NCBI RefSeq assembly: GCF_001194135.2
Contig: NC_068987.1
Location: 80,037,461-80,073,242 of the forward strand
Direction of reading: 5' to 3'
DNA: 35,782 nt
DNA from: Octopus bimaculoides
Lineage: Eukaryota
Part shown: positions 30,967-34,848 of the stretch, one piece after another
Layout: every line of letters begins with the position of its first letter
Position numbering within the stretch: position 1 is the stretch's first letter
Made by a program: the position numbers and the translations under genes
Notes under the pieces: generated by a model
Database searches by the model: none
The model's input: the letters and a program-made list of their open reading frames with translations, nothing else
What the model was told of the DNA's origin: nothing

Positions 30967-31124
30967 GTCATGGCGAAATTATAGCGAGAAGTTACGCCGA
31001 GATAAACTAAATTGTTATTTTGAGGAACTTGCTAAATGTGTCCCTCTTGTAGCGAATTCTCCACAACGCCTGAACAAGACTTGTATATTGCGACTATCGT
31101 TAAGCTATTTAAAATTTCTTCTTG
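30967..31124 (+). CDS. bHLH exon of a bHLH-PAS transcription factor, Methoprene-tolerant-like
   Basis: ttttcttttgcag| acceptor and G|gtacgt donor; encodes (R)SWRNYSEKLRRDKLNCYFEELAKCVPLVANSPQRLNKTCILRLSLSYLKFLL; phase 2 in, phase 1 out. Confidence 0.9.
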
Positions 31125-31397
31125 GTACGTATTTGGTTTCGTTTAGAATTTTATTATTTCTAAATGACAAAAAAACATTTGACATAAAAACAAAATTGAG
31201 CGATCTTTTAGTAGTAAAAGTTACCAAAGATTGTTAGGATATATCTTTTTTAGAAACTGATAGAGACGTGCAAACATTCAATGAAATCCTTTGCATGTTT
31301 GTTAGTTTCTCGCTACGTTCAGAATAAGTGGATGAAAGGCAACATCAAGTTCAAATTCAGCCGAGGTCTGCCAGCTCACGGTCTTGATGATGATAAT

Positions 31398-31490
31398 CAT
31401 AATAATAATAATAATAATAATAATAATAATAATAATAATAATAATAACAACAAATTATAATAATAATAATGATAATAATAATAATAATAA
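31398..31490. repeat. (TAA)n microsatellite
   Basis: Read directly. Confidence 0.95.
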
Positions 31491-31627
31491 AATGGTTGCA
31501 ATACCAGTGATTGTAGGAGCACTTGGAATGATCAAAAACTGCTGGCAAATGGTATACGCACCACCCTGAGGCTGTAACTGAAGAAGAAAATGTAACGATT
31601 CTTTGGAACTTTCCAGTATGTACTAGT
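31489..31627 (+). mobile_element. Rearranged R4/Dong-like LINE endonuclease-region fragments
   Basis: KMVAIPVIVGALGMIK, then in another frame GKWYTHHPEAVTEEENVTILWNFPVCT. Confidence 0.75.
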
Positions 31628-31743
31628 CTGTTGATGTCTGAACCAGCATGGGGAAACTGATGACCTCCCCTGTTCGAAGGTTGTAATGGACACAGGTTTA
31701 TGTCATCAGTTCGCTATGCTGGTTCAGACACCCACAGACTAGT
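31622..31743. other. 122-nt intronic hairpin (42-43-nt arms)
   Basis: actagtctgttgatgtctgaaccagcatggggaaactgatgac (31622-31664) pairs with 31702-31743 with 4 mismatches and 1 bulge. Confidence 0.85.
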
Positions 31744-32076
31744 TTCAGGGTATTTGCCCTTTACCAATGTGGAGTAGTCTAACCCAGCAGGTTACTTAAT
31801 TGTAATATGCTTAATGTGTGACAGGTTCTGGTACACAAAGGTTTATAAAAAGACTGAAAATAAACCATTGGACAACTTCTCTTTCTATCGAAAGTGTTGA
31901 CCCGATCTACTAGAATTCCAATCCACTTAAAATTCTTTTCTAAGGCACAAATTTGTCATTGTTTTTTACTCACTGATCAAACGTATTCGTGCTGCACATA
32001 ATACTCCAACTGTTTTCCAACAAAAGTTTTTAGCGCTTCCTTAAAATCTCCTCTCCTTCCCACCACGTAGGTTTAA

Positions 32077-32195
32077 GGCCGCGAATTGGTAGACTTTTCG
32101 GAGCCGTTTAATAATGTAACCAACCTAGTACTGAGTTGGGAAGAGTCGATGCCACTTTCCATCAAAATTACTGGCCTTGTGCTAGAATTAGAAAG
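32077..32195 (+). mobile_element. Highly diverged SINE family A-like remnant
   Basis: gactttt...taatgtaaccaacctagtactgagttggg..gagtcgat...aaaattactggccttgtgctagaattagaaag. Confidence 0.5.
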
Positions 32196-32255
32196 AATTA
32201 TTACTTTAAAATAAATGCGAAAGAGATGAAACATTGATCTGCAATTGGATTATGA

Positions 32256-32362
32256 TTACTACTACTACTACTACTACTACTACTACTACTACTACTACTA
32301 CTACTATTATTATTATTATTATTATTATTATTATTATTATTATTATTATTATTATTATTATT
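32256..32362. repeat. (TAC)n(TAT)n microsatellite
   Basis: Read directly. Confidence 0.95.
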
Positions 32363-33169
32363 AACAATACTACGAAATAAACATGAGATAGGTTTGATTA
32401 CCTCCACGAGCAAAGAATAATGAATGGATTAATCATAGAATGAATGTAAATACAAAAATATCAGCAATAACTTTAAAAAATAGCATATAATAGCATATGC
32501 CTTTTCTCAAGATAGAACTGAAAGACAGATAACAGGAAAGAAAAGAAAATATCCGTGTGCAGTTATCAGCGAGTTATTATAAAAGTGGAAATAGGAAGAG
32601 AGTAAGTATGTGATTTCTGAGGTGGTGCGATTAGAACCAATCGCGCGTGCGCAAAAAAGAAAAAAAATGAACGAAAAGTAAGCAGGCAGCATCGGTGCAC
32701 TTGTTGGCCAATGTGTGAATACAGTCTATGATAATGCACATACCGACATTCTAGACTGCATCCAAAATAAAATGCTTTCTCACTAATCGGTAACACTTAA
32801 TAAAATGGTCTGACATTTGACCAACATGAGGGCTGTCCGCCAACTCGTGTCTCGTCTACCGGCACCACACTGACCCTCTTCTCCTTGGGTGGGACTTTGC
32901 CACTCGACTCACTCGTTCTTCTCCTCTACTCATTTACTTTGCTTCCCCGCTACACACTAACCAATATAACCAGATCTTTCTTCTCAGTTTACTTCCCCTC
33001 TAGAATTCTTTCCCTGCCTAGGTTTTTTTTTCTTCTGCTGTCACCAAATTACAGTTGTTCAAAGAGAATAATAGTTACATAGATTAATATCTGGTCTCGG
33101 GTAGCATGTAAATGTCAGAGAGTGCAGCCGTTTCCAAATTATCTTTTATTGTTTATTGTTAAAGTAATT

Positions 33170-33722
33170 GAGCTGCGGCTATGCTGGGGTGCCTCCTTGA
33201 AGAGTTTAGTTGAACAAATCCACCACAATGCATATTTTTAAAATCTGGTTCTTATTCAATCATTCTATTCTTTTTTCCAGAACCTCTAAGTTACAGGGAC
33301 CAAAACGAACTAACACCGGTTGCCCAGCTGTGGTAGGGACAAACACAGATACACAAACATATACACACCCATATATATATACGACGGGATTCTTTCAGTT
33401 TCCGTCTCCCAAATCCACTCACAAGGGTTTGGTCGGCCTGCGGCTACAGTAGAAGACACTTGCCCAAAGTGTCACGAAATAGTACTGAACCAGGAACAAT
33501 GTGGTTGGTAAGCAATCTACTTATCACACAGCCACTCTTGCGCCTATACATACCAAGGGCTTCCACAAGTTTTCTATTCAACCATATTCACTCATAATGC
33601 ATTGGTGGGCCCGGGGCTATAATAAAAAAAAACACTTGCCCAAGATGCCGTGCAATGGGATTAAAACTGAAACAACGTGGTTGCCAAACGGATTTCTTAA
33701 CTACACAACTAGCGCCTATGCT
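33170..33722 (-). mobile_element. SINE family B copy (33170-33547) plus an adjacent degenerate 5' half (33565-33722)
   Basis: Colinear with 29669-30068. Confidence 0.82.
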
Positions 33723-33900
33723 TAAAACCAATGCACTAAAGAAAAACGATAATAATAATTTAGTCTCAGTAACAAGAATGATAATTTATCTGATTTTGAA
33801 AATAACAGATTAACGATGAATGATACAAAATCTCAGTTACTATAATAAATTTTGCGTAAATTCTTTTCTGTTTTTTGTCTTTTTTTCTCTTTTTATATAG

Positions 33901-33974
33901 GTTTGAAAAGAAAAGGTTTATTACCTAAAGAGAAATGTAAAACTGAACTGTTACAGCCTGGTAATGTAGAAGAG
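33901..33974 (+). CDS. Linker exon of the bHLH-PAS gene
   Basis: Long pyrimidine tract + tatag| acceptor; (G)LKRKGLLPKEKCKTELLQPGNVEE|gtaact; phase 1 in, phase 0 out, matching both neighbours. Confidence 0.78.
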
Positions 33975-34292
33975 GTAACTGGGTTTATTATTTTCATTAA
34001 ACCTTAGCGTTTTACAGATCGTGAGCAATAATTTTGATAAATTTGCATTTAGTCGTAAGCTGCAAGACAAGCAATAATAATGTTAGTAATTAATTAAACA
34101 TAAAAAAATCTAATTAAAAGTATTTGTGATGAAAATTCATCTTTACTTTCATAAGTTATATGATTTTAATAATTTCGACAGGTACGGGAAAAAAAAACTC
34201 CAGGCAGATTTCAGTCTCACTATACCTCTTTAGCGAAGCATAGGAGTAGACTCGACGAACATGTGTCAATGATTCTCCTGGATCGCTACCTT

Positions 34293-34386
34293 GATGATGA
34301 TGATGATGATGATGATGATGATGATGATGATGATGATGATGATGATAATGACGTTAATAATAATAATAATAATAATAATAATAATA
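34293..34386. repeat. (GAT)n(AAT)n microsatellite
   Basis: Read directly. Confidence 0.95.
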
Positions 34387-34758
34387 AAGAGTAAAGAGAA
34401 CCGTCTGTCATGAATGACCATGGGATTGCTATTAGAAAGTTACCCTCCAAGGCCTCGCAGGTGGGGCCCAGTTAGAATTTTCTTCAGGTCGAGTAGTCCA
34501 TCCCACTCAAAAGGTCCCTGAATAAGGTTTGTTTAAGGATGTTGAGCAAAACACCCATGTTTCCAAAGGTGAATTATTCAAACCCCAAAGAATTCCTCTC
34601 AATACATGGCTATCATGCTCCCCAACTACTTCTGCTCACGATCAGAGATGCACATATCGTCAGCCACCAAGGGTTATGTTCAACTGGTTAAGGTCAAACA
34701 ACTGAATTGTTTTTGTTCTAATTTTGTTGGTTTCTTTATATTTTTGTTTTTCTTTCAG

Positions 34759-34848
34759 TTGATTGGTGGGTTTTTACTGGTCATCACTGAAACTGGAAAC
34801 CTCATTTACACTTCCAAATATATCAAACGATACCTGGGATATAACCAG
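34759..34848 (+). CDS. PAS-A N-terminal exon of the bHLH-PAS gene
   Basis: tttttctttcag| acceptor and CAG|gtgagt donor; LIGGFLLVITETGNLIYTSKYIKRYLGYNQ fits the PAS-A pattern LDGFLLVV..DG.I.YVS..V..YLG..Q. Confidence 0.9.

Follow-up and report, generated by a model that had tools for sequence, protein, structure and literature searches.

A compact bHLH-PAS gene of Octopus bimaculoides as a probable cephalopod representative of the Methoprene-tolerant family

The arthropod proteins Met (Methoprene-tolerant) and Gce are intracellular receptors for juvenile hormone (JH) and methyl farnesoate which pair with Taiman/SRC. To our knowledge neither hormone binding nor a partner or a target is known for any cephalopod or other mollusc member of this family. 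Already in 2014 Met-family genes beyond the arthropods were reported from Capitella and Lottia (Li et al. 2014, PMC4066832), and in 2016 from Platynereis, Lottia and Lymnaea, with functional data in the annelid only, Platynereis Met being the first lophotrochozoan Met to be studied (Schenk et al. 2016, PMC5127642). The annelid and gastropod orthologues led to the proposal of an ancient protostome sesquiterpenoid signalling (PMC5127642, PMC9181382). A 2022 review on sesquiterpenoid pathway genes covers gastropods and bivalves and leaves cephalopods unmentioned, and in the literature searched no relevant report was found on a cephalopod Met or on Met in the octopus optic gland. The present analysis deals with a stretch of 35,782 nucleotides (nt) from Octopus bimaculoides (NC_068987.1, 80,037,461-80,073,242), in the following called the window; all coordinates are window positions on the + strand unless stated otherwise. 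Coding exons 1-4 lie in the window and correspond to residues 1-138 of 398 in the numbering of the O. sinensis orthologue. They probably form the 5′ third of a functional gene for a compact basic helix-loop-helix (bHLH)-PAS transcription factor, which represents the Met (Methoprene-tolerant/Gce) family in cephalopods. Outside the cephalopods this family occurs in annelids and arthropods, in a nemertean and in further molluscs.

The gene begins with coding exon 1 (24989-25080), which consists of an ATG start with an in-frame stop 5′ of it, 30 codons and two last bases belonging to the next Arg codon. It encodes MSQSNEVNEIFLGTNYLSLKPKSTNGFINK(R) and ends at a phase-1 donor (GT at 25081). This exon, upstream of the coordinates given in the original prediction, came to light when the O. 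vulgaris and Argonauta models were aligned to the window by tblastn, and its product differs from residues 1-31 of the O. sinensis protein solely by F11L. Intron 1 (25081-30966, 5.9 kb) is followed by exon 2 (30967-31124, 158 nt), encoding the bHLH from its basic region through helix 1 and the loop to helix 2 (SWRNYSEKLRRDKLN...ILRLSLSYLKFLL), exon 3 (33901-33974, 74 nt), encoding the linker between bHLH and PAS-A (GLKRKGLLPKEKCKTELLQPGNVEE), and exon 4 (34759-34848, 90 nt, phase 0 to 0), encoding the first strands of PAS-A (LIGGFLLVITETGNLIYTSKYIKRYLGYNQ). Each of exons 2-4 has a pyrimidine-rich tract ending in AG upstream and GT downstream (ttttgcAG and GTacgt in exon 2, atatAG and GTaact in exon 3, tttcAG and GTgagt in exon 4). 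The three exons of the original prediction agree with these borders to the base. Joined, they form one open frame of 107 amino acids with junction phases 1 and 0 (SWRNYSEKLRRDKLNCYFEELAKCVPLVANSPQRLNKTCILRLSLSYLKFLLGLKRKGLLPKEKCKTELLQPGNVEELIGGFLLVITETGNLIYTSKYIKRYLGYNQ), in which the predicted order bHLH-linker-PAS-A and the bHLH motif quoted there were found again.

The start of intron 4 fills the last part of the window (34849-35782), where no further coding exon and no homologous open frame were found. The O. sinensis gene is composed of 11 coding exons across 44 kb, and its exon 5 is located about 6.4 kb past the point matching window base 35333, the last aligned one; the window therefore contains neither the remainder of PAS-A nor any of PAS-B nor the stop codon, as the original prediction had stated for PAS-B. 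Exons 5-11 of O. sinensis follow there and map outside the window.

The features of the bHLH-PAS superfamily, an N-terminal bHLH and then tandem PAS-A and PAS-B, are present in the full-length orthologue. In the window peptide Pfam HLH (PF00010) is recognised with E = 6.9e-10 and 39 bits (cutoff 20.7), solved bHLH-PAS chains align to it over the bHLH and the start of PAS-A, and the O. sinensis protein of 398 amino acids (P0173) contains Pfam HLH, PAS, PAS_11 and PAS_3. The basic region reads RNYSEKLRRD, and helix 1 starts with RRDKLN. In the AlphaFold model the helices 30-55 and 68-85 form the bHLH (predicted local distance difference test about 87-92), residues 87-102, the linker from exon 3, are a low-confidence loop, and the strands 113-118 and 122-126 constitute the start of PAS-A from exon 4; the PAS-A and PAS-B folds are both modelled with confidence. 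The top Foldseek matches are full-length bHLH-PAS chains (AHR, HIF, BMAL1 and CLOCK, E around 1e-23), a comparison which has no power to separate the bHLH-PAS families.

A HMMER scan of 1.84 billion representative proteins resulted in 327 relatives at E <= 1e-3. Cephalopod orthologues are the proteins of Octopus vulgaris (P0001, CAI9725818.1, 97 % identical) and Argonauta hians (P0002, 86 %) as well as a complete open reading frame (ORF) of 366 amino acids on a 1332-nt RNA-seq contig (P0003, SRR27666087) from a more distant cephalopod, with 65 % identity (62.5 % for the exon 4 product). A profile of these three retrieved the O. sinensis protein, which is 99 % identical, carries the automatic name "hypoxia-inducible factor 1-alpha-like" and holds all four window exons with two substitutions and the 107-residue peptide with one. 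The mollusc origin assumed in the original prediction is borne out by the protein identity of 97-99 % to the O. vulgaris and O. sinensis models and by a colinear locus: window positions 17984-35333 align in the same order to O. sinensis chromosome CM016865.1, with a nucleotide identity of roughly 85-92 % (83-92 % between the two first introns). The window DNA thus belongs to another species of the same genus.

Flanking and intronic DNA diverges by 8-15 % from O. sinensis. In the window exons nine of 414 coding nucleotides differ, seven of them synonymously and two non-synonymously (F11L and C70S), which corresponds to a ratio of the non-synonymous to the synonymous proportion (pN/pS) of 0.0062/0.076, about 0.08. 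Exon 2 contributes four differences, three of them synonymous, and exon 4 two synonymous ones, while exon 3 is nucleotide-identical; the splice sites are intact in both octopus species. The low difference of the exons compared with the divergence of their surroundings therefore argues for a real gene under constraint. The octopus gene is subject to purifying selection, and its orthologue is transcribed in at least one cephalopod, as the RNA-seq contig documents. One could suspect a pseudogene, or open frames brought together by chance, from the O. vulgaris and Argonauta models, both of which omit exon 4 and one of which is chimeric with a DUF229 gene, and from the first, word-indexed search with the 107-residue peptide, which remained blank. 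That search gave zero matches although a 99 % identical protein was in the same collection, an artefact of index sensitivity. In view of the low pN/pS next to diverging introns, the intact splice sites, the complete ORFs of three other cephalopod sources, including a transcript, and the confident fold prediction this explanation is practically out of the question; it was excluded on the grounds of conservation, splice sites and transcript.

Relatives of the octopus protein are automatically named HIF-, CLOCK-, NPAS2-, ARNTL-, cycle- or SIM-like. Because genuine arthropod Met proteins are misnamed in the same way, such names were dropped as family evidence, and only the author-given name "Methoprene-tolerant" and the accession cited in PMC5127642 were kept. 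This accession, Lottia gigantea XP_009046608.1 (Lg237855; P0019), was used as anchor; it is listed as "Lottia Met" (Schenk et al. 2016, PMC5127642), and Lg237855 clustered with insect Met and an amphioxus orphan in the earlier study (Li et al. 2014, PMC4066832). Further anchors were author-named Methoprene-tolerant proteins from Hirondellea, Glossina, Leptinotarsa and Portunus, and Tribolium Met (P0220), which has an N-terminal extension of 35 residues and matches all eight published pocket residues at that offset.

Outside the cephalopods the full-length O. sinensis protein matches molluscs best (scallops, limpets, abalone, chiton, mussels, oyster), along with a nemertean, and the high-ranking non-cephalopod matches in the representative scan all possess the Met-type motif. 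The phmmer scores are 124-162 bits for molluscs and 104-133 bits for non-dipteran arthropod Met, followed by HIF1A (98.5), HIF2A (94), BMAL1 (78), AHR (73), ARNT (62) and CLOCK (59), the ranking being one-directional, from the octopus protein outward. The window fragment is 36-43 % identical to most Met-family members; for those that diverge most (dipteran Met, Mya, Mactra) the identity falls to 30-35 %. The values for the other families are 33 % (HIF1A), 30 % (AHR), 29 % (CLOCK, BMAL1 and ARNT) and 27 % (HIF2A).

According to the NCBI auto-names of the O. sinensis and O. vulgaris models the protein would be a hypoxia factor of the HIF-alpha type, and HIF-1alpha and HIF-2alpha are in fact the top solved structures (3.5e-9 with the fragment, 9.2e-28 with the full-length protein). 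However, HIF1A remains below the mollusc Met-family proteins in the same program (98.5 versus 124-162 bits), HIF1A and HIF2A form a clade of their own apart from the cephalopods, and the octopus protein has neither LxxLAP nor any sequence where the oxygen-dependent degradation domain (ODD) would sit. Furthermore, its basic region RNYSEKLRRD differs from ARSRRSKE in HIF, and with bona fide arthropod Met the NCBI auto-names go just as wrong (CLOCK, ARNTL, NPAS2-like). A HIF-type factor is thus extremely unlikely.

The placement in the Met family was examined with neighbour-joining (NJ) trees of 41 taxa, calculated from 327 trimmed columns that range from the bHLH to PAS-B. The outgroups HIF1A, HIF2A, BMAL1, ARNT, CLOCK (without residues 152-231) and AHR were taken from PDB alignments because the lower-ranked representative matches were messy models with duplicated segments. 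The bootstrap values are 100 % for the cephalopods, 99-100 % for arthropod Met and 67-82 % for cephalopods together with the other molluscs and the nemertean (69 % Kimura, 82 % Scoredist). The clade of lophotrochozoans, arthropod Met and the hemichordate Ptychodera reaches 90 % (Kimura) or 98 % (Scoredist), 84 % without Diptera, and 75 % when only columns encoded outside the window are used. This Met clade excludes CLOCK, BMAL1, ARNT, HIF1A/2A and AHR. The trees do not place the octopus protein with CLOCK, with BMAL or with any other family in them, and the original assignment to Met/Gce rather than to CLOCK or ARNT/BMAL is in agreement both with the clade (84-98 %) and with the best non-cephalopod matches, molluscs including Lottia Met. 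Membership in the Met family is therefore supported.

The gene structure is consistent with this placement: octopus and Lottia Met share four intron positions (after the N-terminal K(K/R), before G(L/I)K.K, before (L/A)(I/V)(G/D)GF and after LG(Y/H)NQ), which need not be specific to the Met family. Exon 3 is flanked by introns at the positions seen around Lottia Met exon 3, and the boundaries of exon 4 are also common to both genes. The bHLH exon of Lottia Met was not found by tblastn in locus L003, so the borders of that exon are not comparable.

Several points weigh against the interpretation as a cephalopod Met. The 111 columns encoded in the window do not on their own recover the Met clade (3 %), the trees are exclusively distance-based and do not include SIM, Trachealess/NPAS3, NPAS4 and SRC, NPAS1, NPAS3 and NPAS4 being covered by their lower phmmer scores only. 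The Nematostella 'Clock' reaches 124.5 bits, level with many Met proteins, the best match among solved structures is HIF-1alpha, and the analysis covers one octopus Met-family locus. In PAS-B, an insertion of 14-15 residues early in the domain, a low-confidence loop in the model, occurs in cephalopods only; just three of eight JH-binding positions (Y252, V280 and V297) are identical in octopus, and position 262 is F, the same as in the Tribolium change I262F.

The points on sampling, on the fragment and on the Nematostella 'Clock' are those from which membership in another bHLH-PAS family could be argued, be it CLOCK/NPAS2, BMAL/ARNT, AHR, SIM, Trachealess/NPAS3, NPAS4/Dysfusion or SRC, and the basic region RN.SEK.RRD is CLOCK-like as well. 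But CLOCK, BMAL1, ARNT and AHR fall outside the Met clade (84-98 % bootstrap) and score 59-78 bits, NPAS3, NPAS1 and NPAS4 score 74, 73 and 57 bits against the full-length octopus protein, an SRC-like fragment attains only 41 bits against the cephalopod profile, and the ARNT/BMAL signature HSEIE(R/K)RRR is not present. Another family is accordingly very unlikely, and the Met family remains the preferred assignment. The original prediction had named it from the window motif: this call was a good lead and is supported by the full-length orthologues, on which the placement rests, because the window fragment by itself does not yield it. As a side observation, the Nematostella vectensis 'Clock' (P0089, XP_032231171.2) scores 179.5 bits with CLOCK and 169.6 bits with BMAL1 among the solved structures, and it groups with CLOCK/ARNT/BMAL in the NJ tree.

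In Tribolium Met eight positions (Y252, T254, I262, V280, V297, L318, T330 and C347) are described as predicted contacts or as sites where a mutation impairs the binding of JH III, and the change I262F is reported to be such a mutation (PMC9392760). At these positions, which are encoded beyond the window, octopus has Y, S, F, V, V, S, S and A, that is five differences (T254S, I262F, L318S, T330S and C347A). Arthropods are near-invariant (Y, T, I, V, V/A/S/T, L, T/S, C), and other molluscs show W/F, T/S, I, a variable residue, V/I, L/M/V, S and S. Four of the octopus changes would not fill the cavity because the replacements are smaller residues. The insertion in PAS-B is encoded by a micro-exon of its own (residues 262-276 of the O. 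sinensis protein; 39102-39146 of O. sinensis locus L002; SSFANDEICSPSDEW in Octopus), which is missing from all other Met-family and outgroup sequences aligned. Among cephalopods PAS-B is well conserved. The octopus protein ends 38 residues after this domain, and no LxxLAP motif, polyglutamine stretch or long tail was found in the full-length orthologue. No other full-length member of the family (486-1084 amino acids) is as short as the cephalopod proteins with their 366-398 amino acids.

From the knowledge on bHLH-PAS proteins, the octopus protein would bind DNA as a dimer. Recognition of an E-box-like half-site is probable because RNYSEKLRRD keeps the pattern R-N-x-S/A-E-K-x-R-R with which CLOCK and Met read half-sites of the E-box type. 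Dimerisation would occur via the HLH and PAS surfaces with a bHLH-PAS partner of the SRC/Taiman or the ARNT type; in arthropods the partner of Met is Taiman/SRC (PMC9392760). With so little sequence after PAS-B, the protein would depend on its partner for any transcriptional activation. The PAS-B pocket may accommodate a small hydrophobic ligand, JH and methyl farnesoate being at most candidates. Alternatively, the protein could be a Met-family derivative without receptor function that competes with or represses other bHLH-PAS dimers without needing a ligand, for which AHRR and short HIF-3alpha isoforms are models. The shortness of the cephalopod proteins with only 38 residues past PAS-B and neither polyglutamine nor tail, the five changed positions of the JH pocket including F at I262 and the extra micro-exon loop would all fit such a loss. 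On the other side, PAS-B is conserved among cephalopods and modelled with high confidence, most pocket changes lead to smaller residues (S, A) that leave the cavity open, and arthropod Met activity likewise depends on Taiman (PMC9392760). A loss of receptor function is thus a minority view, rather unlikely but the most serious of the alternatives.

Within the favoured interpretation as a Met-family transcription factor, ligand sensing itself, for which the original prediction had made the protein a candidate, is not supported by the sequence, the pocket residues being only partly conserved. It could be imagined that cephalopods possess a streamlined Met-family receptor of 366-398 amino acids with the lineage-specific micro-exon loop in PAS-B and a remodelled pocket that would bind an endogenous lipophilic signal, be it a sesquiterpenoid (methyl farnesoate or farnesoic acid, for instance) or another compound. 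Such a receptor would contribute to the hormones' control over maturation, cephalopods being semelparous. The methyl farnesoate/Met system of Platynereis, a semelparous annelid, offers a parallel for the proposed role in maturation. This extension is speculative and at present must be called unlikely.

Divergent residues had already been noticed in the original prediction. The replacement of D by N at the start of helix 2 (LNK for LDK) stood up, as it is conserved in all cephalopod orthologues. LNK also occurs in the nemertean Lineus protein and in a fish BMAL paralogue, and the change is therefore tolerated. The "Cys-rich helices" did not: the fragment has four Cys, one of which is replaced by Ser in O. 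sinensis, O. vulgaris and Argonauta, and the transcript-derived protein (P0003) retains none of the four, so that they were dismissed as being of no evident significance.

Some public models of the gene are faulty. In O. vulgaris CAI9725818.1 window positions 6328-6729, part of an upstream DUF229 ORF, are fused to the bHLH-PAS gene; moreover, the model omits exon 4 and runs into intron 5. The Argonauta model omits exon 4 too. This in-frame exon of 90 nt is present in the O. sinensis model and in the transcript-derived protein. Because it encodes the first two strands of PAS-A, its omission probably reflects faulty annotation rather than alternative splicing into a functional isoform. The DUF229 ORF (5755-7689, + strand) is intronless, encodes 644 amino acids with Pfam DUF229 (6.2e-130) and a weak Sulfatase match (2.8e-6), and is located on the same strand about 17 kb upstream of the start of the bHLH-PAS gene.

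The remainder of the window is rich in repeats. Intron 1 contains a transposon remnant, a 103-residue ORF (28669-28980, + strand) with a Mos1/mariner helix-turn-helix (PF17906, 2.8e-14), as well as repeats resembling short interspersed elements (SINEs) and a run of N (27893-28190). Dispersed SINE-like repeats of 200-450 bp were found at 1170-1546, 7961-8376, 16730-17383, 25590-26264, 29664-30069 and 33143-33553; their copies match many sites of the O. sinensis locus on both strands with 67-91 % identity, and several are intronic in the bHLH-PAS gene. Five more N runs (657-666, 9122-9739, 10925-11392, 17780-17971 and 22386-22630) mark a gapped draft assembly. Directly after the second of the six gaps an open frame of 195 residues follows (9740-10328, + strand), which has no Pfam match but shows a stretch (TTYVGETARSIEEGANEHW) of GIY-YIG-like appearance and may be the relic of a mobile element. 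Introns carry microsatellites with long (ATT)n, (ACT)n and (GAT)n tracts, for example at 31390-31480, 32258-32365 and 34293-34390. No Rfam family and no tRNA were found in the window.

For cephalopod endocrinology and for genome annotators the locus represents an incremental advance. It provides a concrete candidate for probing Met-type ligand signalling in cephalopods, and it flags errors in database annotation, namely the label "HIF-1-alpha-like" and one chimeric gene model.

In comparison with the known bHLH-PAS systems, CLOCK/NPAS2 have nearly the same basic region, RN.SEK.RRD. CLOCK differs by RRDQFN (RRDKLN in octopus), a shorter loop and its position outside the Met clade, and it is the lowest-scoring solved family (59 bits with the full-length protein; 23.6 bits, 1.5e-3 with the fragment). 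ARNT/BMAL likewise stand outside the clade and have the basic region H-S-(E/Q)-I-E-(R/K)-R-R-R in contrast to RNYSEKLRRD. HIF-1alpha and HIF-2alpha have in common with the octopus protein the bHLH-PAS fold, the top scores among solved structures and helix 2, (M/L)RL(T/S)(I/L)SYL(R/K), but they belong to a separate clade with lower scores and a different basic region, and octopus is devoid of LxxLAP/ODD and of the C-terminal activation domain. Arthropod Met/Gce share the architecture bHLH/PAS-A/PAS-B, the motif RN.(A/S)EK.RRDKLN followed by VP.VA.S..R..KT.(I/V)LRL, the clade (84-98 %) and the retained Y252, V280 and V297; the differences are a full-length identity of 22-29 %, five of eight changed pocket positions and the lack of the PAS-B insertion in arthropods.

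The best full-length matches are the lophotrochozoan Met proteins (Lottia, Patella, Haliotis, chiton, scallops, mussels, oysters and Lineus; 124-162 bits, same clade with 67-82 %), which apart from Lottia Met are unnamed or misnamed in the databases. They have the motifs SEK.RRDKLN, ELAK.VP and L(T/S)(V/L)SYLK..GLK+K in common with the cephalopod proteins. Compared with their 606-1084 amino acids, the 366-398 of the cephalopods are about half or less, and the C-terminal region is missing. In addition, cephalopods possess the micro-exon of 14-15 residues in PAS-B, Y instead of W/F at Tribolium Y252, S and A at 318 and 347, and LNK instead of LDK at the start of helix 2, which among the others is found in Lineus. 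Since lophotrochozoan Met has already been reported from limpets, snails and worms, the octopus gene extends a known family, and with mollusc and annelid orthologues published its novelty is smaller than the original prediction implied. The family, its occurrence in molluscs and the general mechanism are already known; the variant features of this new member are the compact size, the PAS-B micro-exon and the altered pocket.

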